Source of the DNA: Botryllus schlosseri
Lineage: Eukaryota
Reading direction: 5' to 3'
Length of the DNA: 64,000 bases
Assembly (NCBI GenBank): GCA_051294905.1
Contig: CM119380.1
Location: 22,878,001-22,942,000, forward strand
Shown: positions 12,001 to 32,479 of the stretch, one piece after another
Layout of the letters: the number at the start of each line of letters is the position of its first letter
How positions within the stretch are numbered: the stretch's first letter is position 1
The notes under the pieces: model-generated
What the model saw: only the letters and a program-made list of their open reading frames with translations
The model's database searches: none
Told to the model about the DNA's origin: nothing
Translations under genes and position numbers: made by a program

Positions 12001-15000
12001 GCGTTTGCCGGTGTGATTATCTTTAGAAGAAAAATTTTAAAATATATTTTACTTAATGAAAAAAAATATGCTGATTATTTGTTTATGCTGATTATTTGTT
12101 TCACCATAAATCCCGCCGAAAACACGCACGAAGGAGCTATAATAGTTTGAAGAGGAATGATTTTTCCAAGACGAAGTGAAAAATGAGAAAAATGAATTGA
12201 ACGGGAATCAGAATTAAAGATTTTTTTTGTTGAATATATCAACAAAATACCGAATTGTTGTGTTTTACTGTGAATCCCACCAAAACGTGTGAAGAAGCTG
12301 TAACAGTTCAAGGAGGCGTATCTAAATTTTGTTTCTTTTATTGTATGTGGAAAATAAGGAAAAGTATTCGAACTGGTTTCGTAGTTAAAAGGAAATATAT
12401 TCACAATTCCATTTGTGTGCCTTGGAATCAACTTTTATCAAAATACACCAACCAAAACTCTGTCAACAAAAGGAGTTCGTGTATCACCTCAAAATAGTAC
12501 ATTGAACGCTCTCTCATTCGAAATTTCATGCTGGTGACGTCATATTTTGTGATACGATTGTTGATATACAATGTTCTTTCCAATTCTCTACTAGTTGCTG
12601 ACGATTACCCCTGACGAGTGTCAGCCGAAAATATTCGGGTTCATTTCAATATGAATATAATATTTAATTGGAAATATATTTATGAAATTGATAAAAATAT
12701 ACCGAATCATTACTTTTACTGTAATGTTCATGTTTTTTTAAAGCATTTACGGAAAGTCTACGAGGACCACCTGGAAGACCCGACGGCGCCAACGTGGGTC
12801 AACGACTCCCACTGGGTGCCGCACCCAGTGACCGCCGCGGCGGCTCCCAAAAAGAGCAGGAGCAGGCGGGGCCGGAGGAAAGATGACGTCGCCGAGCCCC
12901 ACAAGACGGGCTCGGCGAGAACGGAAGGTGGGTAAACGGTGGTCACTCTCCGACTGTGGCTCTCTAATGGTACAGCGATTTTTTTTGCCACAAAAAAACA
13001 AGATTTTGTCCTAAAAAATCAAAATTTTGACATTTTTCGACCTTCCAAATATAAATTGCGACCAAATTTAACCTAACGTATGCAAATTAGGTGTTTTCCC
13101 ACGTAATGCTAAAATTTTACTACTTATTTTCATTTCTGGTTGGTACTGTCTGTCCTTAACAAAGCAGTTTGGCCCGAAAAAAAAACTTTGTGCCTCGAAA
13201 ACTGACAAATTCTTACATGAAAAAATTTTTAACGAAATTTGGCCCTGTGGAGAATTTCAGCAGTTGCATTCCTCATTATGGTAGAAATTTTTTTATTTTT
13301 AATTGTAGTACAACGAAATGTCTACGATACAAACGAAATGCAGGTTGCAAAAAAGTTCTAACTTTGTAAACAATTTTGACATTTTTTGACCCGACACTTC
13401 AATTTTGACTATTTTGACATTAAAAAAAAATCGCCCTACATGTGAGTCCGCCGAGTATATTACAATTTTCTATCTTTTGAATATTATAAGTTTACCAAAA
13501 ATTAGTATCCTATATTATTGTATCACACAGAATAAAATACAAACCTAAACCGTCATGCATGCTTATTAGGGCTGTTCAAAAATAACTTTTTTTCCTGAAT
13601 CTTGCTGGTTACTTGATTAAATCGTTAGGTTGCCTTAAAAAACGACGCATACCAAATTTGAATTCATTCCGACAAATATTCGCGGGTTACGTAGAGTTTG
13701 AAAATTTTGGATTTGGCCAAAAACGCAAAAAAAAAATTTTCTCAAATTTTTTTGCCAACCCCATGAAATTGTTGGGCTGTCTTCAAAAACTATGCAAAAC
13801 AAATTTGACTCAATTCCAAGCTGTAGAACCGGAGTTATTTATGTTTTTATTCGATAATTCTGGGATTATCCTTGATTGGTGGATAATCCAAGAATTATCA
13901 CCGAAAAACTGGAATAACTCCGCTTCTACGGCTTGGAATTGAGTCAAATTTGTTTTGCATAGTTTTTGAAGACAGCCCAACAATTTCATGGGGTTGGCAA
14001 AAAAATTTGAGAAAAATTTTTTTTTGCGTTTTTGGCCAAATCCAAAATTTTCAAACTCTACGTAACCCGCGAATATTTGTCGGAATGAATTCAAATTTGG
14101 TATGCGTCGTTTTTTAAGGCAACCAACGATTTAATCAAGTAACCAGCAAGATTCAGGAAAAAAAGTTATTTTTGAACAGCCCTAATGCTTATACATCGCT
14201 GTGTGATGTATTTCATGAACTTTTTAGATTGCTTTTCCCTGCATTAGCTGTAGTGAATGTCTGTTTCTTTTGTTTTGTTTCAGTTGCTGTGATGAGAGTA
14301 TTTCGTAGCTAACTGTAGATATTGGATTAGTTCTACCAGAACCAGTGTCTATTTGCTCACTTTCATGGGTACTTGATTAGCGCCGTTTCAATCTTCAGTG
14401 TTTTGCTTCTTGGATGTACAGAACTTCAATATACAATTGAATATTATATTCATATTGAAATGAATCCGAATACTTTCGGCTGACGCTCGTCAGGGGCAAT
14501 CGTCAGTAGCTAGTAGAGAATCGGAAAGGACATCGTATATCAACAATCCATCTTCTCCACCACAGGTTACTACAAGCTCGAACAGGGCATCAAGCTGACG
14601 CAGCGGCGGGAAATGTACGGCCAGAAAGACGGGCAGTCGTCCAAGTCGCTGCAGATGGCCAAGAGCGTCACGGGCAACGGACCCGAGCCTGGGGCTGGAT
14701 GCTCCGCCGACAAGAGCCTCGGTACTCGCGAGACCAGGCACTTCATGCGGAGGATAGCGGCCGAAGTCGGCGCCGACATGGGTGACCTCTTCAAGTACAA
14801 TCAGCTCATGGTGAGATGCGGGGCGCTTATTCTTTGTTGGTCACCACTGAATTCGTCACTCGATAAATTTGTCACTAGACATGTAATTTAAAAATTATTA
14901 TTATGAATGCGATGCATCAATATCGTATTGATAAATTATGAAATGAATGTTTCATTCAATATAAGCGGGAATTGTGATATACGACGATGTATGAATTAGG

Positions 15001-17518
15001 CGCTTTGTAAATGTGGCATTGAAGCTTATTTAGCAGGGTTGTAATGACTCGACTTGACTCGAGTCGTTTCGTTAAATGCGTAAAGTGACTCGACTCGAGT
15101 CAATTTTTGTATGCACTCGAGTGGTTGTGCGGGACTCAAACCAAGTCATATGGCTCGAGACTGGCGGCTGAGACGGACATTTCGTTGTGCCTTCGAAGAA
15201 TAGTAAAGTTACCACGTTGTTGGTATTTCGTCTATCAGTCCTGATACTTGGAAAATAGGGCCAGAAACTGTTTAAACCGGGGGAAATTATTACTATATTA
15301 TGAATGCGAGCCATTCTGTAGCACCCGAGCAGAGTTGAAAAGGTTAGTTGAACTGGATTGGACTGAAAACTGAGCAGTGAACATGATGACTTGTACTCAA
15401 GTCAAAACACAATGACGCATTATTGTCAGGGACCGTATAATCTCTCTTACTCGACTCATTGTGTCAAGCCCTACCTATTAGCACCTAAAAGTATGCGACC
15501 CTCGACCTAATCCACCTTTTGAAACTACTTTAGTTCTTTTCGTAACTTGGATTTGTGTTTCGGAAATGACTACTTTCGCTTGTAACCCTCTTTGGCGTGC
15601 CGGGCTCGATTTGGATGTTTTCCTTCCGCGACAGTTTCGCAAGAAGGCCGTGAAATTCAAGCGCAGCAGCATCCACGGCTGGGGCCTGTTCGCCGAGGAG
15701 GCCATCGGCGCCGACGAGATGGTCATCGAGTACGTGGGCCAGGTGGTGCGGACGCTCATCGCCGAGCGGCGGGAAGTCAACTACACGGAACTGGGGATCG
15801 GCAGCTCGTACCTGTTTCGCATCGACACGGAGCACATCATCGACGCGACGAAATGCGGCAACTACGCGCGCTTCATGAATCATTCTTGCAACGTGAGCGT
15901 CATGCTTTCCGTTTCATTTTTTCTCATTTATTTATATAATATTTTTTTGCAATATATTATTTTCTATATTTGTTAAACAACGCCCATAAACTACCCGAAT
16001 CTTGTGTTCGAGTCTTTGGGACGGTGTCCCGAACCCGCAAACTTTCGTCCCTGTCCGTGAGATATAACCTGCGTGAATGTGTCGGCGATTGGTAGAATAG
16101 GCAGACGATGTATATCATGTGCAGAGGTGGTTACACTAGGTGTCGTTGGTACTGAAGTAGAAATAACGACGGAAAACTGTAGTAGAAGTAGTCCAAAGCC
16201 ATACCCACGTAAGGAAGTAGTACGAGTATCAATAGCTCCTCGAGAGCTCTGCAAATGTAGAAGCACTTCTCTACTGACCACTAGTGATCTGATCTGATCG
16301 CCATTGGTACTCGATAGGGTCCATCAAACCACTAGGTGTCGCCAGACTTTTGGTGGTAAACGCCATTGTTACGTACGCGGTTGCCGTTATCAGGAACTTG
16401 TAGGTTACTTTCTCGATTGTGTAAGGGTATTTTATATGGAAATAACGGCTACAACATATTCTACGTAGACCGTGAGCTCGCTATAAAATGAACTAAAACT
16501 TTGGAAAGCTTCTACGGAAGGAAATAAGGCCGATTTGATAACTAGGTGAGAATGTGAAATTGTCAACTAAATTTCGGCTGCCAGCTCAGCACCAGAAGTT
16601 TTCGAAGTTTTAGTTCATTTTATAGCAAGCTCACGGTCCACGTAGAATATGTTGTAGCCATTATTTCCATATAAAATACTCTTACACAATCGAGAAAGTA
16701 ACCTACAAGTTTCTGATAACGGCAACCGCGTACGTAACAATGGCGGTTACCACCAAAAGTCTGGCGACACCTAGTGGTTTGATGGACCCTATTGGAAGTA
16801 CGAAGTGATGTCATAAATTATTACTCGAGTACAAGTAATAGTGATTTGCGGGTAAGAACTAGTTTTTCCAGGCCTAGTTTTGCCTGGAAAACTAAAACCA
16901 ACTAGAAGTAGAGTAGGCACCTCTGGGGTTATATCCAACTCCGAATACTTGGACAGTACGTCCTCATCCTTCTCCGCTATGTCTTGGTAGATCCGTGATG
17001 ACATAGATAAAGATAACAAGTCAGTCCTAAATTATAGTTTTAGTCCTAAACCTCTTTGCTTACAATTGAATAGTATATTCATATTGAAATGAACCCGAAT
17101 ATTTTCGGCTGACACTCGTCATGGGTAACCGTTAGCAACTAGTAGATGATTGTAACGAACGTTGTCGTTGTGTATCAAGAATAGTATCCCTAAATACTTG
17201 CTTGTTGCCGACGATTACCCCTGACGAGTGTCGGCCGAAAATATTCGGGTTCATTTCAATATGAATAAGCCGTGCAGGTGTAAATTGAAGTCCTGCGTCT
17301 CCAGGAAGCTCATTTTGCTAACCGTCGGCTCCTTATTCTCACAGCCTAGCTGCTACGCGAAAGTGATCACCGTCGACACGGCGAAAAAGATCGTGATCTA
17401 CTCGAAGGGCCCGATCGCAAAGTCCCAGGAGATCACGTACGACTACAAGTTTCCGCTGGAAGACGACAAGGTCATGTGCTACTGCGGGGCCGAGAACTGC
17501 CGACGGACGCTGAACTGA
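1..17518 (+). CDS. SETD1: Histone-lysine N-methyltransferase SETD1A/B (Set1) homolog, 5'-partial, multi-exon
   Basis: Phase-consistent exons: <1-746, 2245-2365, 2987-3144, 3207-3259, 4186-4475, 5510-5891, 6553-6684, 7572-7732, 8180-8307, 8369-8552, 9401-9855, 11132-11240, 11797-11982, 12744-12927, 14566-14810, 15635-15892, 17345-17518 (TGA). Set1 motifs seen: [42 protein letters not shown] ([21 protein letters not shown]), WIN motif GSARTEGYY, SET domain ([47 protein letters not shown]) and post-SET ([26 protein letters not shown]). Low-complexity internal exons are less certain than the SET exons. Confidence 0.95.
843..1221. mobile_element. Imperfect foldback element / MITE in a SETD1 intron
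   Basis: The left end aattggtagtcctatactggcgacc matches the reverse complement of the right end ggtcgccagctatagcactaccaatt. Internal arms (ctgattctgaaaata / tattttcagaatcag; accctgaaac / gtttcagggt) are also complementary. Confidence 0.65.
1737..2153. mobile_element. hAT-like MITE, family rich in GACTCGAGTC subterminal repeats
   Basis: Termini CAGGGTTG...CAACCCTG. Related copies or fragments lie at about 5935-6370, 8612-8680, 15034-15455 and 17957-18616. Confidence 0.75.
3745..4160. repeat. Dispersed repeat with many TACTT/AGTA motifs (probable non-autonomous DNA transposon)
   Basis: Shares cagagg..aagtacttctactt and gtaactgagtagaaattt-type motifs with about 4598-4640, 16120-16270, 16790-16920 and 42024-42450. 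Confidence 0.5.
10061..10560. mobile_element. hAT-like MITE with a perfect 8-bp TSD
   Basis: TIR TAGGGCAAG...CTTGCCCTA, flanked on both sides by ATTATTAC (10053-10060, 10561-10568). A related copy lies at about 22530-23290. Confidence 0.85.
10779..11085 (+). mobile_element. tRNA-derived SINE, family 1 (Meta-domain-like core)
   Basis: A-box-like TAGCGTAATGG and B-box-like GGTTCCATTCCC, followed by GGGTCAGACCAAAGAC. The body is shared with a 5'-truncated copy at about 35790-35985. Confidence 0.75.
11300..11760. repeat. Dispersed repeat (MITE-like) shared with about 38090-38528
   Basis: Both copies share gtcataacag..cacaaagaatataat..ttggtattttcgaccatg..tcgaaactat..tactcga..actcgaatca. Confidence 0.65.
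12495..12657 (+). repeat. ~170-bp dispersed repeat carrying a minimal hammerhead-like motif
   Basis: Near-identical to 49309-49480 (+). Partial copies lie at about 14445-14548 (-), 17070-17140 (-) and 17205-17265 (+). Confidence 0.8.
13567..14184. mobile_element. Near-perfect 618-bp palindromic hAT-like MITE with an 8-bp TSD
   Basis: TAGGGCTGTTCAAAAATAAC...GTTATTTTTGAACAGCCCTA. The arms are complementary almost to a 9-nt central loop (13872-13880). ATGCTTAT is duplicated at 13559-13566 and 14185-14192. Confidence 0.92.
16315..16791. mobile_element. Foldback element / MITE with ~190-bp inverted arms
   Basis: TAGGGTCCATCAAACCACTAGGTGTCGCCAGAC... is mirrored by ...GTCTGGCGACACCTAGTGGTTTGATGGACCCTA. 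No 8-bp TSD was found; a TA duplication is possible. Confidence 0.85.
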
Positions 17519-18616: not shown

Positions 18617-19572
18617 CAAAAAACATGGTTACTACAATGGTGATAATTGAATTACTGATCGCGCCTATTTCCCTGCATCCAATGATAGCAATGACATCAC
18701 GAATCCCATGAGCCTGATAACTATGTCTTGTCCTCCGACGAATCCCTGGAGTTCGTGTGAGCTGTTGCGTTGCGTTGTTGTTTGTGTCAAGCCTATTCAT
18801 GGTGTTTCTACAATCGCCATTTACGATAGGCCGGTATTCTTTAAAGCATTGCCTTTTATTATTGCAAGCCATGTTGCATTCTGTCTAGCCTTGAGTTACT
18901 ATTAAAATAATGGAGCATTCCACTCGGATCTACTATATATCTTCTGCAATGTCAGAGTAGGCGAGATACGTTACAATGTAAAGGCGTTCAACAGCACCAC
19001 AATCATAAATTAAGTCGGAGTAGGGCGCGGTGAGTCCGAATGACTTTGGGATGCCAAAGATCTCGCTGAGGAAAACATAGCTTCAGGAATCATATCAAGA
19101 CCAGCGGTAGTCGAAGCATAGTCAGCATTGCTTCTCACGTGTAAATGGCCCTAAAATGAGCAAAGAAAGTCGCCGTTTATTGGCGACCCATGCACTAGAA
19201 CAGTAGTTCAGATCAAAATACACTAGATTTAATGTAATAACAGTAACACCGCGTCCTCAACCGACATGACTGTATCTGCAATCTGCATGAAATACGTTGC
19301 CCATCTGTGAAACAGCAGCCAGCAGTGACAAATGATCACTATGAAATTACGGTCCGACGTGCTCGTTCAAACGTTACTTGTGTTTCGCATGACACAACCT
19401 TTATTGCTAATGACGAAATGGACACCAATTTCATCGATTAGCTGTCGTTGTCCCATGAGATCCGAATAAAAGAAATTCCGTATATATAAAGTCAAAATAC
19501 GAACCTGATTTCTTGCATTAGATCTCTCGCCGAATCTGGCTTTGGTACGGACGATAATCAGAAGGAAAAGAT

Positions 19573-22500
19573 ATGCTTAGTTTGAGTTGTGTCTTCATTC
19601 AAATTATCGTGGCAACGCTTGGAGCTTCTTATCAAGCCTTACCAAGTAAATATCAGGTGAGATATACCATGCCTAATTTTAACTATTTCGGTTGCGCTTT
19701 TGAGATTGTTAGTTCTCCCATTTCAAGATCTATAACATTGCTACAGTGTGTGGCGATGAGACGAAATATCCACATTTTGAAACATGGGCGAAAATCTCCT
19801 ATCGGGATCAGTCTGATCTTAAGGTTTCGCGCCAAACCGTTCATATATTCGGCATGAACAGATTGCACAGTGCACAGTCTGCACACTGCGCACCTTATCA
19901 ATTTGGATATTAGCGATCGAAACCAATATGCTAGCAGATATCTAATATTCTTCCGTCACAATTATTTGCTTGTCCAGTCCATTTCATCTCATTGTCGCTG
20001 TTATTGCTATTGGCCATCATGCCGGCAATTTAAACGTTATTCATGATCGATTCAAGATCAAAATCAATCCACTTATCCGCGACTTGTCAAATTGAAAAAA
20101 AAATGAGGAATGTTATATACCTCGAAACGTAACCTATATTGCAGTGGTTCTCAATCTTTTTGTCTTCGCATACAACATTTTGGGCCGTCACGGACCTATG
20201 CGGACTCCTCTAGTTTTAATTCAAATTTAGCTCAATTATCGTACAACCGTCATCTGTCTTGTGCAAATATTAACCGTAGGCTAGTTATAAACAGGAGGTA
20301 CACTTTGAATATTGAATTCTACCTACGGTTTACGGTTTCGTGTCTTGAAAATCCGCGCCTTTTGCTAACGAGAGCCGAAAATCCATTTCCACAAAGATAG
20401 GTCATGGCGAATGTGATAATAACGCGTATACGCTTCCGACGACATATTTGGGTATATGATTGCAACAAATATATATGGCACCAAAATTGAGAAACAGCCT
20501 GGTCATTTCGGTCCAGCAGCTCATCTTGAAGTTATTATATAGATCGAGTGTATAATCACAGGAGAAAATGGATTTTTGTAAAGTCACCGCAATTGACCTT
20601 AATTATCCAACTTTCTATTTTTCCACAATCCCCAACAAAGCATGTCTATAAACAGCAATATGTTAGTATCAGTAGGCCATTAGCAATTCAATTAGCACAG
20701 TACAATATTTCATCTCAGACGACCCTTCTGTTGATGTGAGTCCTGGAGTTTATTTACTAGTAATGAAGCGAAATTGCCGAATGATTTCCCTAATTTAAAA
20801 AATGTAAAATTAGGTTATTGTAAATATGGAGGTTTTGCGGACATGCTGGCATGCGCAGGTGTGGTATTTCAATATTCAAATTCATCACCTTCTCGCATAC
20901 AGGCATGGTAGGCTACTTAGAATTAACAATGCGATGTCATAATTATAGTTTTGCGTTCGTGTTCACAAATAATTTTGTTAAAAGTTGGTCTGTATGTCAG
21001 GGACGGGCAACATACGGCCCGCGACGGGATTTTGACAGGCCCGTAGAGAATTTCTACCCTGAAAGCGAAATTCTATTCTGAAAATATTGACAAATTTTAT
21101 GCGCCACAAAATGAATCCAAGTTCGCTAACCTGAGGAAGATGGACATGAAACTATATATACTTGCTCTGTTCGGGTGTACACTGACACTGTACATATATT
21201 TTCGACCATGAACATTAACGAGATAAGGCTGCGTTACAATGTAACTGATGTTCACATGCAGTCTTTACTAATGGTTTCTACATATCGCATGTAGGCCTAG
21301 CCATAGTCTAAAGAACTTGTTGACAACTTTTACTGACCAGAGATGTCTGAATGACTTCAACAGCTACTGTTAATAAATTCAATAAATACAGTTTTTGGTC
21401 TTTAAAGTTTACATTAAATAAGCGATTAATGTATATATTCTGTAATCGGGCCCGGCAAGAGCTTCATTTTCCCATATCCGGGCCGCGGACTGGATAAGTT
21501 GCCCACCCCTGCTGTATGCGAACTCTACTTTCCATAGGTTGACGGAAACGCCAAAGACTATACCTCATTTGTCTCGATCTACCAAATTAACAGTAACGTT
21601 TAATTAGGCTTCATTTAGGCTCGCGTGGCTTGGAGCCGTCACCACATATGAAATACACACGATACAATGGAATCACAATTCATGAAATAGGCATGGGTAA
21701 CTGCATTGTGAGTCCGATGAAAAAAGTAGGACATTACATATGGAAGAATTGTACAATGTTCAAATCGTAGACGACAAAAATCAACTCCGTCTGTGTCGTC
21801 AACGTCATCATGTCAATCGAAGAAATGATCTATCCAGTATCCAGCACAATATTCCCAATGTGATTCAAACAGCCAAATATGTTATACCTTGGACTCGCCC
21901 CGTATACGATCTGCGGGTCTATTATCGTACCCGAGACCCAAAGATGATCTGGTGTTTAATTAGGAACCGGAGGCAATAATCCGGGCTCGTACGCACCATC
22001 ATTACATTACTCTTTATAGGCCCAGTTATTGCATATTTAAATATTAAAATTCCAGTAACATTCTAAGATTCAAGAATACCACCACAGTGGGATACCGTGC
22101 TATATATGCTCCATTATAACAGTGAACACACGTAGGCGGTTTGCTGCAGGCACACCCCATTACGCTCATCGAATCCTTATGTGTAGTGAAATTAATCGGC
22201 TTGTTCTCAAATACGATTAGCGATTACATTAAAATGTATTCAATTATTTAGTAACCCTGAAACATGCAACGAACTGTTGCGGATGACATTATACCAGCGC
22301 TGTTCAAGTAACCATGAACCTCTGCATCGTGCGTATACTCGAAATGATTCAATGATCATCTATCTTGTGGCCACGAAATAAATGATTAAAATCCCAATCC
22401 TCAAGGGGGGTAATCCAATGATTCAATAACATATGTTGAAGTCTGATTGCTTCTGATTCATCGTATTTCAGTTATACTTGCCGATCTTGTCATAATTTAG

Positions 22501-25696: not shown

Positions 25697-27418
25697 ATTG
25701 TACCGATTGCAATATGCATGTACAATGTACTAAATATATACTGTACCCGCAATGTTGAGACAGATAGATAGCCTACAAGTCAATATTTTCCAACCAATTT
25801 TGTGAGGCAACCCCACAAGGAAATCAGCGATATCTCATGACCCCTCTGCGGATCACATTTTTGTTTCATTTTAGTAAGATCAAATAATATGGATTTTACA
25901 TTATCTCATACATTTTCGACTAGGACTGGTTGTGAGAAGACTGGCTAAGAGCAACTTTTAAATTTGTGTCAACGTATTCAATAAAGTCCAATAGCCTCAC
26001 ATTCTCAACGACTTTATTACGTTTCTTGCCTTGGCGGTGAAGTACATGTGTGCTGAAAATCGCTCTAGGAAAGACTCGTTTGCTGAAACTACCTTCAACG
26101 ACATATTTTAGACAGGCTAGCTAGAAATGCAAATGAAAAATTCAATCAGATTCAATTCAAAAGATCGCGTGGATGTCCTGAATATTCGACACACCTAAAT
26201 TCGATAGTAATCTCGACAAATGGGCTGGGAAACACTGGTGTATAGTATGCTGTATAGGTGGCCTTCATGATATGATATGCATATATGAGCTAATGTAAAC
26301 AATAGTCATTAATATATTAGTCGCTGCACTTGATTATGTTAAATCTTGGGGCCACACTAGATTCCGTGTATTTTCTTCGTGCCATATAAGGTAGTGTTCC
26401 TTAACCTTGTCGCCAGCACCTCCCAAGAGCCCGTATATAGCCAAATACAATTATAGAATTAATTAGTCGAGTGGTCCTCGGGCGCGATTGAAGCTATTTC
26501 CAATAGTGAAGTCCCAACCCGAAAAGACCGATCGGCCTTTGAACTCTCACCCCTTCTTTAAATTACCGTAGTGAAACGACGCAAAAGTGTGACTCGACAT
26601 TAATCCGTATCAACCTCATGTTGCAGGTTCGTATCACAATTCATTCGGCCTATATTCCGCATAACTCTAGTGTCTAGATGCCGAGACCACATCTTCAATA
26701 CGATGTCAGTGAGATTTTTCGAGACGAACGAATACATACAACATAACATATGCTACAGTTAAGTCAGGCTTAGTAGTTGTATGCAACCGTCGGGTTATCA
26801 TTTCCGCACTTAACCTCGCGACTCAAGTGCCACGTCACTAGTACAAGTCGAGTGCTCTGAACGTGGATACCAGAACGAATCGGTCAAGCGTGGCGATAGC
26901 GGAATAGATCGGTCGATAGCCCAGCCTTGCGTGGAGATATAGTAGTATTCTACAGCTGTAACATTGTAACAACGGTGGCTTGTGAGTCCGACTCCTCCAT
27001 TCTATCTCAGCTATGCAGGTTTATACATGCTCCTCGCCATCCGATCTGTGTAAGCGCTGTCTTACAAATCCCTAGAATGAAAGTGCCTGGTGGCTTACGA
27101 ATCACGATGTGACATGACATCTGATGTCGAAACGCCACGAGGGCCAAACTGCTAACACAAGTGCTACCTCACCAAACCTAGCAAACGCACGAAGAGAGCT
27201 TGTTGATTTATACGAAAGTTTCCCCCGGATCGCTTTATTCGTAAAATATCAACCCGACATTATTGCAGCTTCATTATTTTCAGTGGCGCTTCATCCAGGA
27301 ACTAACGCTGGAGTACTATGGCAACAAGGTACAAGTAAACAACACTAACGATAGCCAGCATGCGTCGACACCACTGACATCACATATATTCCTATATTGT
27401 CCCGTCACAGGTCCCTGC

Positions 27419-27513
27419 TCAAAGTTCGGATTTGGTCTCGCCGTCCTCTGCCTTTTCGGTCTTTTCCGGTTCCTCTTCTTTCTTCTCTTCAGCGGCCGGT
27501 TCGTCTTTTTTCT
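27419..27513 (-). CDS. Alternative terminal exon of CRELD encoding an acidic tail ending KSEL-stop (soluble CRELD2-like isoform)
   Basis: Acceptor ctgttag precedes a phase-1 exon reading (E)KKDEPAAEEKKEEEPEKTEKAEDGETKSEL*. It matches the phase-1 donor G|GTGAGC at 27865/27864 inside the TM-coding exon. Confidence 0.75.
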
Positions 27514-27625
27514 CTAACAGGTAGAAAAGAACGAGGTTGTTCACGAGAACGTACACGACACGCAACGAGACACACGACTACAGGCAGGGCTACATGAAGA
27601 CAGACACGAGATTTATTACGTAACA

Positions 27626-30399
27626 CTACAGTTCTCGGTGGTGTTTCGTAAAATGATCCATCAACTGGTCGGACTTGTCTGCGGCCCACCACAGGCCGGC
27701 GCATAACAAACTAACAAAAAACAGGGCTGTCCATATCAAATCGCCTTTCGCGGCAGCGGTCCCAATCAAGCAGATCACGAACGCTACTGCAAGCCGTTTG
27801 ATATCTTCGTCGCTAAGGCTGTCGCTGGCCGGTTCAACGGCGTCGCCGGTTTCTACACGCTCACCCTCTGGTTTTCCTTCTTGTTTTGCTTTGTCTGCAC
27901 CTGGAACAACACGCGACACCGGTGCCATCCTCGAGTATATGTTAGGGTCTGGCTGGCACTGGCCGGTGGATTCGTCTCGGCGGAAATACCTTGCGCATTC
28001 GCAACGGTAATGACCCATGGTGTTGACGCATACTTCGTACATTCCGAGGCAAATAGCTCCGCTCGAACACTCATCGATATCTGCGCAATCGTCTCAAATC
28101 AGTACACGCAAACCCACAAACAATATTCCGCAACCACACCGCTACACATGTCCAGTTTACAGAGCATATATCCGTTGCGATATATAGTCGGGCTAATTGC
28201 GCTCTACGAGCGATATCCAGGAAGCTACAAAATTCTAGGCTGATGAAGCTAACATAGAAAGTAAAGATTGTTTCCTTAAGCATGTTTAATGTTTATAGAT
28301 ATTACCCAACTGACAGCGCCAATTTTCGTTAGCGTGATAGAATTTCCTGACGTTAAACAGGCTAATTGCGAATGAACATGAATGTGTGATGGTGCCTAAC
28401 CACCTCACGGGTCACGCAGCAGATGTTGAAGTGATTCGAGCGTGACTGTGAATCTACATGAAATCTGAACCTTCTATACTTTGGCTGTAACGAAGGTTAT
28501 GAATCAATCAACTTTGCGTTCCAGCACCTTGGCACATGTACGGCATCGTCATAATCGCCCCCCTAATGCACTCCTGACAGTGAGAGGGTCCGGGTCCGAA
28601 GCAAGTTTCGCACAAAGGACTGCATTCTAGGACGGTAAACGCACTACTGTAACTTGGTAGCTTGAAGGATTAGTTTCAAAGTTCTACCGACAGGAACACA
28701 CGACAAAGTAGCTATTGCACGACACCTATACGTGACCTTGGCAGACAAATGGTTGACGCATGATCAATCCTGCTTTGCAACCAAAGCAATTTGTGTGGAG
28801 AGGGCCGTAGCACTTAGTGCAAAATGGATGGCATCTCCAAGCTGAAAACAAGCAGATACATACCAACAATGGGTATTTACGTGGTCACAAGCACACTCAT
28901 TCCTCCAAAGTTCATTCTCACACAGCTCATTAACACACATGTAATCGATATGATCATCATGTCAATTCATTGAACCGTGGTTCATTTGGAAACCGCGACA
29001 CAGTCACACCAGTATTCATATTTGATCCACCACACCGAATGGCGAACGGAATAGTGATTATGAGTGATGGACACTATACATCCTGAGATAATTCTTGGTA
29101 GGTAAACGATAAACTGTTTTTCTACTCGCTGAGAATAGGTTTTATGCTGGCGCAGGAAAGTATATTACCTTCACAGCTGTAAGATCCTTCGTTGTTGAGG
29201 CAGTAAGTTCCGACCGAGCACAAGTTTTTCTTCTCTACACATTCATTGATATCGGTACATTTGATTTCGTCTTCGTTATCAATGTTTTCTTCTTGCCTGA
29301 AGCCGGCTTTGCATGTGATACACTCGTTGGATTTGTTGCCTTTGCATGTTGCGCAGGAATTATGACACACTGCATCATCGTAAAAATTCGGTTAGGGAAA
29401 TCATGGAAACTCAATGGAATGGGAAAGTTTCAACCTACATGAGCACATGATGTAAGTGTCATTTCTGAATGTTTCAAAATGTCCTTCGCCACAGTCGTTG
29501 CAGAGTTCGCCTCCGTATCCTTCGTTGCAAATGCATTCTCCGGTTCCCTCTTTATCTCCGTCACCCTGAAAATGGGATTGAATAGTGGATCAAATGAGGA
29601 TGAAGTCCACAAAACAATGTCGATTCTACTTACGGAACATGTTCCACGTCCATAGCAGATCTTTCCAGAGTCTCCTTTTGGACATTCTAAATTGTCAAAA
29701 AAATTCATTGAGCAAGGACCGAGACTGTATGTTTACTACATTCATTTGTACCTTGGCATTCTGGTCCAAAGGTGCCTTCGGGGCAGCACACTGATAAAAA
29801 AACAAAGAATTATGCTGTCGTTGCAATTTGTCAATAGTAACAATGTTCGTCATACTAACCTTCAGCTTCTTGAACACAAAGATAGTCGTAAAGGGACATA
29901 TCATCTTGTCTAGAACAAAATTATTCACAGATTTGGTGAAGAGGTTTTGCTTGAACTGGTTTAAAATACTCACAATTTATTGTACCATTCATAGATTGAG
30001 TCTTCCTTTTCTTCAAGAAGAGCATTGCACTTGTGATTGTCTTTCGAGCAAGCATATGTTTCCAAAACTTCTACGAGTCTGGTTTCACTAGTTTTATATT
30101 TTCCTAATTTTTTCTCCTCCCAGGCTACATCCCCGCCTTCAAAATTCTTCTTTTTTGTTTTGTCTAATCCCTGGATAAGTGAATATTTTGATAAGATATT
30201 CCGGTGACACAATAAAGCATACGGTAGGATACAGCACAAGTGCAAGTAGATTGAATTATGTGTTAAAAGATATTGCAGTACTTACATCGAGAATTCCTTT
30301 AGCAAGAGTTTTGCAATTTTCACATTTGTTGTCTGCTGAGGCGATCAGCACAAATGCTGATACCAGTGCAAGTACGAGAAGTTGACTTGATTTATTCAT
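27626..30399 (-). CDS. CRELD1: CRELD (cysteine-rich with EGF-like domains) protein, transmembrane CRELD1-like isoform
   Basis: Exons (-): 30399-30286 (signal peptide, KCENCK CxxC), 30170-29974 (NFEGGDVAWEEKKLGKYKTSETRLVEVLE, the WE domain), 29909-29860, 29790-29752 (CCPEGTFGPEC), 29686-29634, 29565-29439, 29369-29169, 28841-28737, 28626-28528, 28080-27626 (DIDEC EGF, then LAVAFVICLIGTAAAKGDLIWTALF, matching the CRELD1 two-TM region). All splice phases are consistent. Confidence 0.92.
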
Positions 30400-32479
30400 G
30401 ATTTACCAATAACGGGAATATATCTATATATGAATTAATGTCTAATATCTGTGTGTTGAGTTCATAATAATTGACATATTAATATTGGGTACAAATCAAC
30501 TACGCAATCAATCATGATATAGCATGACTTCTGATACAACACGACATAGCATGTATGTCAATCACACATCAACTACGCCAACATTAATGCAAAAAGTCCC
30601 CAACTATTTCAATCCAAAACAGACCAAATTCGTGCAAATAGTTTTAGTCAGAACAAAACTTTGACGACGATGACAACTACTGCAAAACAACTTTTTCTGT
30701 TCATGTTGTATATTTTATTATTCATCATCCGGAAGTATAATTCCCACGTAGGTTTGTCGCAGTACGCACTCAACCATGCGATAACTTGTATATAAAGTAA
30801 AATAATAGCTCAGTGTCGCACACGCCTTGTCCTACCCCATTCGTTAATTCAAAATGACGTTATAAGTTGATGATCAATTTAAAAATTAACTTTATTGTTA
30901 ATCATGCAATATAATATTAGGAATTTTCGCAATATTTTCGGTACGCTAGCTAGAGATAGAGAACAATCACTTTTTTGAAACTGCCAGATTTGGTACTGTC
31001 GCTCATTGTAACCCCGAGCTAAATATTGTTCCATCTTCGTGCGAGTTGGTAACGATATTCAAAGTTAATATTCGCATTCACATATAGATTCTTGGTATAT
31101 ATCTTTTCCTATAATTATATATTCCAGTGATCTAAATCGACCAAAACTTAGTATACCATGCTCTGTCGTTGTCCGACTTGTAATATAAAAATACCTTGAA
31201 AACTGCTATATCACCCTAACCAGATGACGACGAGATTCCGAATAAGGTCCAGCGTTCAGGCGTATGTACTTATTGGCCAGGATGTTCATGCGTGGATTTA
31301 TTGATTTTCACGTCACGCCGGTCGAGTGTCCTCACATATGCTATGAGATGAGGCTGGCCAACCAATGAAAAACTGACAAATTTGTTCGAGTATAACGGAT
31401 AGGAGTCAAGGACGCCGGCTGCGCACGCTGAGCGCTTGGAATAAACACGTGTTTCAATTAATCGTATGAAACCCATTGCTCTGTTTCACAATTAAATATA
31501 ATTTTATTGCCAACCTACTTGAAGTTGATACTCGACTGAAGGCTTCGTGTACTGATATGGGAGTTTTTCTGATTGGTTCGGCAGTTAGCAATTAGGACAA
31601 TGACGTGTCTATGATGTCGCGAAATTCCTTCATTTTTAGACATTAACATGTAGGCTGCTCTTGTGATAATATTCGTTCAACTAGGGCAGGATCGGCAACT
31701 GCAGCGCGCCGAAATATATCAATGTCAAAATATTACCAACTGGCGTGCCAAACAGTTTTTGTTTTGTAACATTTATCGTTTAAAGCCTGGAATCCCACCA
31801 ACCGCTTATCTGAAGCTGACAGCGGTATCGGTTAGGCCAACACTAATGGTTTTCAAAGTATTGTTGGCGTACGGCAGGGGTGGCCAAGCTGCGGCCGTAG
31901 AACGAAATTTGTGCGGCCGTTGTTGACACGTAATTCAATTAGTATGCGCCGGCGGCCGTCGACTTGCAATTTGAATTTACGAATTGACTCCCTAATTTTT
32001 GAGATATTTTGATTATTCTTGTAATTTTCTTCGCTGCGCGTGATTCAATGCTGCTATATTTTTCAATTTTAATATAGTAGGCTAACGTCCTTTGCAATCC
32101 GAGCCCCACAGACTCCCACAGTACATATGCGATCAGCAGAGGAAAATGATGCGCCTCATATAGAAATACCAACTTGGAATCGTGTGCTCCTCGCGAAAGA
32201 AATTTGTTTCTGGTACGTTTGGGCGACTACAATATCTGTCTACTATACCGAAAATACCGATGGCAGGTCAAGAAATAACAGCATGCAACAAAGTTACTAA
32301 TGAACAATTGGCCCATTCGAAGATGTATCATCATGTATAACTAGCCCTAAATTTTCGAAAACACCCCTTCCATCAACTCCACTGGGGAATCTGCTCACAT
32401 TGACTGAGAAAGGATAGATTTTTTAAGGTAAAAAGGGAAACTACTAGTATCAATGACGAAATTCAATCGTGAATAAGAA

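Follow-up and report, generated by a model that had tools for sequence, protein, structure and literature searches.

Does a single CRELD gene supply both a membrane-anchored and a soluble ER protein? CRELD proteins are ER proteins of the protein-disulfide-isomerase type, built from a signal peptide, a WE/DUF3456 domain, a CXXC motif, EGF modules and Cys-rich repeats. CRELD1 has links to septal defects of the heart and to the assembly of acetylcholine receptors; CRELD2 is an ER-stress factor. The question is raised by a CRELD gene of the tunicate Botryllus schlosseri, which occupies positions 27203-30450 on the minus strand of the window, the stretch of 64,000 nucleotides analysed here, to which all positions refer. 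An earlier note, made from the sequence alone, had proposed that this one locus encodes both kinds of protein through an exon-internal 5′ splice-site switch. We examined the proposal with RNA evidence from four runs of four studies: X23 (bulk), X21 (single-cell, 3′-tag), and X1 and X2 (Logan contigs).

Gene structure, copy number and family membership

The exon map of the gene is collected in Table 1. Beyond 30450, 79 reads of X23 and 44 reads of X21 run on into one shared sequence, which reads GATTGGAGTATTTGGTTGTATTA(AG) in the sense of the mRNA. The 25-nt leader of the CRELD mRNA is identical to the 'Chordata 1' spliced-leader consensus; the spliced-leader sequence has 467 dispersed copies in the genome versus 0 for the control, and one genomic copy is directly followed by a GT donor. 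At the other end of the transcript, the distal poly(A) site is marked in X21 by loose ends consisting of T runs before 27224 (13 reads) and 27203 (6 reads).

Table 1. Features of the Botryllus CRELD gene (positions in the window)
Feature	Position	Strand	Description
5′ UTR	30400..30450	-	behind spliced-leader trans-splice acceptor: AG 30450-30449, first exon base 30448
Exon 1	30286..30399	-	ATG at 30399, signal peptide, N-terminal CXXC (C-E-N-C); joint 30285/30169
Exon 2	29974..30170	-	WE/DUF3456 domain; PF11938, E 2.1e-6, above cut-off; read joints
Exons 3-7	29909-29860, 29790-29752, 29686-29634, 29565-29439, 29369-29169	-	joints of 100-160 reads each
Exon 8	28737..28841	-	Cys-rich furin-type repeat, 'W..CYGP' type; normally used
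Exon 9	28528..28626	-	alternative Cys-rich repeat, 'CFGP' type; almost silent in the sampled runs
Last EGF exon, common part	27865..28080	-	second cbEGF and linker, up to the internal phase-1 donor; EGF_CA E 1.5e-7
Internal acceptor ttccag/GTGCAG	27900..27901	-	first exon base 27900; joined from exon 7
Dual-use stretch	27626..27864	-	intron in the KSEL form; coding in read-through
Proximal AATAAA	27612..27617	-	8 nt past the HREL stop, then a GT-rich stretch
Remainder of intron	27514..27611	-	pyrimidine tract, TAG acceptor
Distal terminal exon, coding	27419..27513	-	acidic tail EKKDEP...GETKSEL and TGA; depth ~300, maximum in the gene
Distal 3′ UTR	27203..27418	-	AATAAA 27239-27234; cleavage sites 27224, 27203

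Hydropathy of the exon-1 translation predicts a signal peptide, with residues 1-26 hydrophobic. In the in-frame model, exons 3-7 encode the CCPxG, EGF-like, furin-type repeat and first cbEGF parts of the protein, and Pfam places EGF_laminin on exon 6 and EGF_CA on exon 7 plus the last exon. Exon 8 is covered to a depth of ~150 and joined on both sides (142 reads at 28841/29169 and 108 at 28080/28737). Exon 9 has a depth of ~1-2 and, among the joints listed, one of 4+1 reads at 28080/28528; its 'CFGP'-type repeat is the type found in Styela and Clavelina proteins. All EGF-module exons are phase 1-1, so whole modules can be skipped in frame, and a joint that leads from exon 7 straight to the distal acidic exon (27513/29169) is present. 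Another in-frame joint from exon 7, 27898/29167 (cut +2), enters the last EGF exon at its internal acceptor and is carried by 17 reads in total, 13 in X23 and 4 in X21. The earlier note had read this site as an alternative donor, from 27901 to 27513; no such joint occurs among those listed, and the reads identify the site as an acceptor. Every isoform model is in frame.

Searches of the 495-Mb assembly with either the WE-domain exon or the TM tail match this locus alone. It is the only CRELD gene found there, in keeping with the single gene that the earlier proposal presupposed. Two other DUF3456 loci (contig 2 at 16.58 Mb and contig 9 at 15.58 Mb) were rejected as CRELD copies because all other CRELD parts are absent from them; their matches cover no more than 31 residues of the WE domain or are unspecific. 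The closest named homolog is Styela clava CRELD2 isoform X2, with 67% identity over 447 aligned positions, and full-length relatives have both PF11938 and PF07645. Residues 88-146 of the last exon match vertebrate CRELD1-type tails with E values of 1e-9 to 1e-6 (HMMER) and match tunicate tails as well. A maximum-likelihood tree groups vertebrate CRELD1 with CRELD2 in one clade (95/85), leaves the tunicates outside it, and puts the Botryllus gene within the tunicate CRELD clade (100/100). On these sequences, the tree places the vertebrate CRELD1/CRELD2 split after the divergence of tunicates, which makes the Botryllus gene co-orthologous to both. This separation of the tunicate clade from the joint vertebrate clade agrees with the pre-duplication state envisaged at the outset.

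Splicing and read-through in the last EGF exon

The last EGF exon contains an internal phase-1 donor, CAGAGG/GTGAGC, whose last exon base is 27865, and the distal acceptor, ...ttctacctgttag/AG, has its first exon base at 27513. Joining the two gives the frame ...KPE-EKKDEP...GETKSEL with a TGA at 27421-27419, and a read-supported soluble model of 398 residues that has no TM helix and carries KSEL at its C-terminus. The joint itself (27513/27865; GT..AG, minus strand) is spanned by 118 reads with 60 start points in X23 and by 10 reads in X21; it also occurs in two Logan contigs of X1 and has a matching loose end in X2. Reading through from 28080 instead yields the EGF module, a linker, two hydrophobic segments (388-412 and 404-429 by hydropathy) and HREL, followed by a TAG at 27628-27626, for a TM form of roughly 446 residues. 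Read-through RNA is present at low depth: ~20-23 at 27596-27869 versus ~260 at 27870-28006 in X23, and, in X1 and X2, 7-8 for a contig covering 27485-27894 versus 212-250 for spliced ones. Every other intron of the gene has a depth of 0. In the dual-use stretch, 7 of 8 variants are synonymous, an outcome with an estimated probability of ~4e-4 if a quarter of changes are assumed to be synonymous.

Taken together, the RNA and sequence evidence for two isoforms lies far beyond chance. The reads over 27865/27513 and the read-through depth and contigs bear out the proposed switch at a single locus, the in-frame splice to an acidic KSEL tail and the two-TM HREL end obtained by reading through. One correction concerns proportions: the KSEL-form mRNA is the major product and no side product, and the TM/HREL form is minor in the sampled runs. 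Read-through accounts for ~6-9% of depth in bulk reads and 2-3.5% in the Logan contigs (~2-9% overall), and its peak in the 3′-tag run X21 is ~15% of the distal peak. This variation between runs is a hint at regulation and not a demonstration of it.

The locus is thus very probably a single tunicate CRELD gene with a composite terminal EGF exon, from which splicing produces the major soluble KSEL form and read-through the minor two-TM HREL form. Use of the phase-1 donor after 27865 removes an intron of 351 nt, and the spliced mRNA finishes in the small acidic-tail exon, encoding a soluble CRELD2-like luminal protein with a KSEL end. When the donor is left unused, translation would continue through the linker, the two TM helices and HREL to give a CRELD1-like membrane protein. 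Some of the read-through transcripts seem to stop at the AATAAA just past the HREL stop, and the remaining ones retain the intron and finish at the distal site. The choice between the two isoforms may be regulated.

A different account of the 3′ ends is less probable: the proximal AATAAA may be unused and all TM-coding mRNAs may retain the intron and share the distal end, which would make the switch a pure splicing choice with no poly(A) competition. Bulk depth does go on past the proximal AATAAA (17-23 at both 27587 and 27552, the same as upstream), so that much of the bulk read-through simply keeps the intron as far as the distal site; the Logan contigs likewise extend from 27894 into the distal exon, and none of the loose ends listed, a set that excludes 578 others, is a read with a poly(A) tail near the proximal signal (~27595). 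Against this stands the 3′-tag run, in which the depth at SNP rows drops from 59 at 27746 to 16 at 27647 and 0 at 27587, with 3 at 27552. The proximal 3′-tag peak lies ~100-150 nt upstream of the AATAAA, an offset equal to that at the distal site, and no A-rich stretch able to cause internal priming is present. The X21 coverage fits a separate poly(A) signal at 27617-27612.

KSEL and HREL as putative retrieval signals

The KSEL and HREL tails may both act as retrieval signals for the KDEL receptor, and the C-terminus of the TM form is probably luminal. Neither tetrapeptide fits the strict PROSITE pattern [KRHQSA]-[DENQ]-E-L quoted in PMC2140024, KSEL having S and HREL having R at position -3. 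The same study describes a widened code that takes K, R, H, N or an aromatic residue at -4, any residue but Pro at -3, E at -2 and L or F at -1, and reports that AKxEL reporters are ER-localised for each x except Pro (PMC2140024). KSEL lies inside the AKxEL series assayed in that work, which does not report the combination H-R-E-L. Luminal C-terminal HDEL/KDEL-like ends on membrane proteins have been noted for two yeast and four human proteins (cited in Raykhel 2007, PMC2140024). The Botryllus TM form resembles these in carrying a KDEL-type tetrapeptide at its C-terminus, with a topology and an HREL-dependent retrieval that are presumptive here.

It is conceivable that both mRNAs are real and that KSEL and/or HREL nevertheless do not function in retrieval, the acidic form being mainly secreted and the TM form being placed by its TM helices, in the ER or elsewhere. 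Apart from the departure of both ends from the strict pattern, such a reading can draw on the motif-free ends of Phallusia, whose TM form ends in PRDA, and of vertebrate CRELD1, which ends in KGR; xxEL is thus not universal in tunicates. A review states that AGR2 loses function on changing KTEL to KSEL, so that variants at -3 are not equivalent, and many ER proteins remain in the ER once their motif is removed (PMC2140024). We nonetheless consider it unlikely that the ends lack this role. E-L at -2/-1 and K/H at -4 are kept in nearly all tunicate forms of both kinds although the preceding low-complexity tail drifts freely, the reporters tolerated every x but Pro, and CRLD-1B behaves as a KDEL-retrieved protein in C. 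elegans (PMC6245729). TM forms ending in H/K-x-E-L occur in Styela, Clavelina, Ciona and further relatives, which extends to other tunicates the retrieval-type end that the earlier note had pointed out on the TM form. Many proteins of tunicates have acidic xxEL tails, and in Clavelina and a TARA tunicate scaffold the TM stop is followed downstream by an acidic exon. The earlier note had staked its reading on conservation of the KSEL exon, and these tails and exons bear that out. If functional, the xxEL end on tunicate TM forms would independently support a lumen-facing C-terminus of CRELD1-type proteins, which is disputed.

Conservation of the layout and comparison with known systems

Clavelina, the TARA scaffold, a coral and Hydra share one layout: the last EGF exon has an internal consensus donor in phase 1, reading through it gives a TM tail, and an acidic xxEL exon follows downstream. 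The junctions of the first three are predicted from sequence; the predicted joints lead from CCG/GTAAGA or ACG/GTGAGC to ...aaaaacag in Clavelina and from 13407 to 15386 in the coral locus. In Hydra, the annotated soluble form takes an AAG/GTAAAA donor and read-through leads into two TM helices. Two exceptions show that the layout is not universal: read-through of the last intron (44 nt) in the sponge Oscarella yields no TM segment, and the gene of the bug Rhynocoris is a TM form free of introns, whose ~3.6 kb of downstream sequence contain no acidic xxEL frame.

It is highly improbable that the soluble KSEL protein is the sole functional product and that read-through is non-productive, a retained intron without a role. 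Read-through amounts to no more than 2-9% of depth and, in the bulk run, spans the entire intron into the distal exon, as a retained intron would, but every other intron of the gene has a depth of 0. The stretch also forms an open reading frame whose product is homologous to the TM tails of CRELD1 in animals from tunicates to vertebrates, and it is low in non-synonymous variants (1 of 8). An AATAAA with 3′-tag coverage in accord follows the TM-form stop, an equivalent read-through TM frame is kept in Clavelina, coral and Hydra, and it is the TM isoform that AChR biogenesis requires in C. elegans (PMC6245729).

We therefore return to the two-product gene. It dates the CRELD1/CRELD2 split to the vertebrate stem and makes that split an example of alternative isoforms turned paralogs. 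Its layout, common to Hydra, coral and three tunicates, suggests that the switch belongs with the older alternative-splicing events conserved in animals. We give about even weight to a fuller scenario, in which the switch was already present in the cnidarian-bilaterian ancestor, its two outputs were divided between duplicates as vertebrate CRELD1 and CRELD2, and the tunicate TM form added a luminal H/K-x-E-L retrieval end. The principle of one CRELD gene with two isoforms has been in print since 2018 for C. elegans, and current views are not overturned; the Botryllus locus adds a read-supported case in which one gene gives rise to a membrane-anchored and a soluble ER oxidoreductase in the closest living relatives of vertebrates.

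Both kinds of isoform are already represented among the NCBI models for Ciona, and the papers that came up in a literature search on tunicate CRELD make no mention of CRELD. The automatic model X2 of Ciona intestinalis is a TM form with an HQEL end and so combines TM helices with xxEL as the Botryllus form does. In model X4 the equivalent of exon 7 is followed directly by an acidic tail ending in KEEL, an event seen here as joint 27513/29169, and X1 of Hydra vulgaris uses the equivalent internal donor. These Ciona and Hydra isoforms and Styela clava X2 are bare NCBI model names ('CRELD2-A isoform X..'), for which we found no description of a switch.

In the immunoglobulin mu heavy chain, the choice between a donor inside the terminal exon and read-through to a nearby poly(A) signal decides between membrane and secreted forms. 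The polarity is opposite in Botryllus CRELD, where read-through gives the membrane form and splicing the soluble one. Vertebrate CRELD1, with two TM helices, and CRELD2, soluble with a REDL-type end, have the same domain order as the Botryllus gene; the TM tail here is homologous to that of CRELD1, and the acidic tail with its ER-type end resembles CRELD2. In vertebrates, the two outputs reside in two genes and the CRELD1 end is KGR instead of xxEL.

The closest parallel in the literature is crld-1 of C. elegans, a single gene that makes CRLD-1A, with two TM helices, and CRLD-1B, with a KDEL end (D'Alessandro et al. 2018, PMC6245729); the earlier note had cited this precedent correctly. There as here, membrane and soluble KDEL-type isoforms differ in the C-terminal tail alone. 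Both C. elegans isoforms are ER proteins, and both termini of the TM form have been proposed to be luminal. The tails of crld-1 are encoded by separate last exons, 9a and 9b, each with its own acceptor, whereas in Botryllus the EGF exon itself runs on into the TM tail and an exon-internal donor leads to the soluble one. Unlike crld-1, the Botryllus gene has a dominant soluble mRNA, and its TM form also ends in xxEL.

The last-exon splice switch and its RNA support

The switch lies at the 3′ end of the minus-strand CRELD gene, whose model was rebuilt from sequence and then corrected with RNA joints (see table). Without splicing, the last exon encodes an EGF domain, a linker and two hydrophobic segments ending in HREL-stop (TAG at 27628-27626), while joining of the internal donor at 27865 to the acceptor at 27513 yields an in-frame acidic tail ending in KSEL-stop. 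RNA was mapped on 26500-30600 using two raw-read runs and two Logan contig sets from four studies. The 27513/27865 joint was found in 118 reads with 60 start points in the bulk run X23, in 10 reads of the 3′-tag single-cell run X21 and in two contigs of set X1; in set X2, a loose end with letters matching the exon upstream of the donor represents the same joint. The RNA label of X1 and X2 was a guess; contigs in these sets have six exons spliced together and are therefore RNA-derived. Together with the read-through depth, the joint in all four datasets confirms the proposal of the earlier note that one locus produces both KSEL and HREL ends from this internal donor.

The soluble KSEL form is the main product. 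X23 depth is ~260 at 27870-28006, ~300 in the KSEL exon and ~20-23 across 27596-27869, and a contig spanning 27485-27894 has a depth of 7-8 versus 212-250 for spliced contigs. Read-through into the transmembrane (TM) tail is nevertheless not background: the remaining introns of the gene have zero depth in every run, and the read-through frame is open and shows homology to the TM tails of CRELD1-type proteins from tunicates and vertebrates. Seven of the eight variants in the dual-use stretch (27626-27864, minus strand), which is intron for the KSEL form and coding for the TM form, are synonymous third-position changes (estimated chance ~4e-4, assuming a quarter of changes synonymous) and the eighth (T to I) falls in the linker. 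This bias indicates within-species purifying selection on the TM frame.

At 27552, 27587, 27710, 27849, 27876, 27991, 29327 and 30015, essentially all covering reads or contigs in every covering run differ from the assembly, and thus the allele of the sequenced animals differs from that of the reference individual; the difference at 27876 is a G to A amino-acid change. Positions 27243, 27434, 27455, 27464, 27469, 27695, 27716, 27725 and 27746 are heterozygous within runs.

Features of the CRELD gene and related loci (a slash marks the splice boundary)
Feature	Position	Strand	Details
mRNA start, trans-splice acceptor AG	30450-30449	minus	reads
Exon 1, signal peptide and C-E-N-C motif	30399-30286	minus	translation
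Exon 2, WE/DUF3456 domain	30170-29974	minus	PF11938
Exons 3-7, EGF-type modules	29909-29169	minus	sequence and RNA joints
Exon 8, first Cys-rich repeat, 'W..CYGP' type	28841-28737	minus	sequence and RNA joints; depth ~150
Second Cys-rich repeat exon, 'CFGP' type	28626-28528	minus	depth ~1, almost silent
Last EGF exon	start 28080	minus	EGF_CA
Internal donor CAGAGG/GTGAGC	last exon base 27865	minus	phase 1
KSEL-exon acceptor ttctacctgttag/AG	first exon base 27513	minus	sequence
Non-CRELD DUF3456 (PF11938) locus	assembly G000 contig 2, 16583941-16587682		L014, L015, L019
Non-CRELD DUF3456 (PF11938) locus	assembly G000 contig 9, 15584823-15585807		L016-L018
Clavelina locus	L020		EGF-linker-TM-stop exon, then acidic exon ...KKEEL; phase-1 donor CCG/GTAAGA or ACG/GTGAGC in linker; pyrimidine-rich acceptor; predicted
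TARA tunicate scaffold	L021		order as Clavelina; acidic exon ...KKEEL; phase-1 donor AGG/GTAAGG; pyrimidine-rich acceptor; predicted
Coral Desmophyllum locus	L022, 13265-13627 and 15386-15501		phase-1 donor AAG/GTAAAA right past last EGF; acceptor 2 kb downstream; predicted
Hydra locus	L024, near 19265-19620		phase-1 donor AAG/GTAAAA, used by annotated soluble form

Transcript ends and further isoforms

At 30448-30450 (minus strand), reads of the CRELD mRNA extend into a shared 5′ sequence, GATTGGAGTATTTGGTTGTATTAAG, which is a trans-spliced leader of 25 nt. This leader exactly matches the 'Chordata 1' consensus for spliced leaders listed in PMC3795323, has 467 dispersed genome copies versus none for the reversed control, and is followed by a GT donor in the one copy examined (L006:1501-1527).

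At the 3′ end, the distal exon carries a poly(A) signal (AATAAA, 27239-27234) with poly(A) tails at 27224 and 27203. A second, proximal AATAAA (27617-27612) lies 8 nt past the HREL stop and precedes a GT-rich stretch. X21 depth at variant positions is 59 at 27746, 16 at 27647, 0 at 27587 and 3 at 27552, placing a peak ~100-150 nt upstream of the proximal signal, an offset equal to that of the distal site; the peak, about 15% as high as the distal one, fits use of the proximal site. Depth in X23 persists at 17-23 beyond this signal, so many read-through molecules there simply retain the intron, and the read ends listed include none with a poly(A) tail at the proximal site. The proximal site is likely used. 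A 63-nt GT..AG intron within the distal 3′ UTR (27316-27378, minus strand) is removed in 4 reads, all from the single-cell run.

Joining of 27901, which the earlier note had offered as an alternative donor, to 27513 is not among the joints listed; ttccag/GTGCAG at 27901 is instead spliced to exon 7 as an acceptor, in 17 reads. A further joint, in 18 X23 reads, links exon 7 directly with the KSEL exon (27513/29169), and in X21 this joint is as frequent as the full-length one (12 versus 10 reads). Both 27513/29169 and 27900/29169 (minus strand) skip the repeat-plus-EGF module in frame because all module exons are phase 1-1. The same short forms are seen in Ciona intestinalis isoform X4, which has the structure of the exon 7-KSEL exon joint, and in two unnamed proteins, P0158 and P0098. 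The two adjoining phase 1-1 repeat exons are alternative Cys-rich repeats; the nearly silent 'CFGP' type is the one carried by Styela and Clavelina proteins, and both types occur in other tunicates.

Copy number, phylogeny and conservation

When the assembly was searched with the WE exon and with the TM tail, this locus alone matched, in agreement with a single CRELD gene. Two further loci found by the PF11938 profile were rejected as CRELD copies, as they share at most 31 WE-domain residues with the gene and nothing else; given the proteins in which this domain occurs, both may be canopy-type.

Protein matches include Styela, Clavelina, Phallusia and Ciona, with Styela nearest among the named ones: Styela clava 'CRELD2 isoform X2' is 67% identical to the TM model over 447 aligned positions and 68% identical to the KSEL model across the latter's first 367 residues. 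Together with the 'Chordata 1' leader, these matches mark the genome as that of a tunicate. In a maximum-likelihood tree of 32 proteins, which has weak deeper branches, several long-branch rows and a mixture of TM and soluble forms, CRELD1 and CRELD2 of vertebrates are joined in one group (95/85), to which none of the nine tunicate sequences belongs; these make up a clade of their own (100/100). The gene in tunicates is thus co-orthologous to CRELD1 and CRELD2 alike. The reading of this locus as a pre-duplication CRELD gene with CRELD1-type and CRELD2-type outputs is supported but needs correcting on three points: most of the product is the soluble form, donor 27901 is unused, and the support for proximal poly(A) site use is indirect.

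The same division into two classes is seen among tunicate proteins in public collections. Acidic soluble forms end in KQEL, KSEL, KKEL or KEEL, and TM forms in HQEL (Styela, Clavelina, Ciona), HSEL, HTEL, KQEL or KTEL, with PRDA in Phallusia as the exception. Conservation of the KSEL exon in relatives is seen in these acidic xxEL forms and in the acidic downstream exons of Clavelina and the TARA scaffold. At the DNA level, the layout appears in three further loci and an annotated Hydra model; junctions outside this species are predictions, Hydra's excepted. The predicted coral product (...KKK-VEVVEDEDD...REEL) resembles anemone soluble forms, and the Hydra donor exon, when read through, gives two TM helices homologous to those of coral. 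In all cases, the codon that spans the donor in the read-through frame is Gly GGT. The layout is absent from the CRELD loci of the sponge Oscarella and the bug Rhynocoris. Both cnidarian loci (Hydra and coral) have a composite last exon and, downstream of it, an acidic exon of the KAEL or REEL type.

Possible ER retrieval and known precedents

The TM form combines a signal peptide with two TM helices, an arrangement that should leave its C-terminus in the lumen. Neither KSEL nor HREL matches the strict PROSITE pattern. Raykhel et al. 2007 (PMC2140024) found that AKxEL reporters accept any residue except Pro at -3 and that H and K perform equally well at -4; they also report membrane proteins bearing luminal KDEL-like ends. 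AGR2 loses its function when its KTEL end is swapped for KSEL (review), so -3 variants are not interchangeable. ER retrieval by both tails would be a reasonable inference, with motif conservation as support.

The C. elegans precedent in the earlier note is right: crld-1, the sole CRELD gene, produces CRLD-1A (two TM helices) and CRLD-1B (KDEL) through alternative last exons 9a/9b (D'Alessandro et al. 2018, PMC6245729). Both isoforms reside in the ER, the TM form is proposed to have both termini facing the lumen, and it alone supports acetylcholine-receptor assembly (PMC6245729). A single-gene arrangement was considered 'likely' in Drosophila (PMC6245729), where one CRELD gene gives two peptides (Paradis et al. 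2022, PMC9307246), and NCBI models of Ciona already include both isoform kinds. The one-gene/two-isoform principle is therefore not new. This locus contributes RNA reads that show it directly in a tunicate, an xxEL end conserved on the TM form of tunicates, and an architecture other than the worm's, in that crld-1 uses two separate last exons whereas the Botryllus gene has a composite last exon with a donor inside it, an arrangement that shows signs of being shared with cnidarians.
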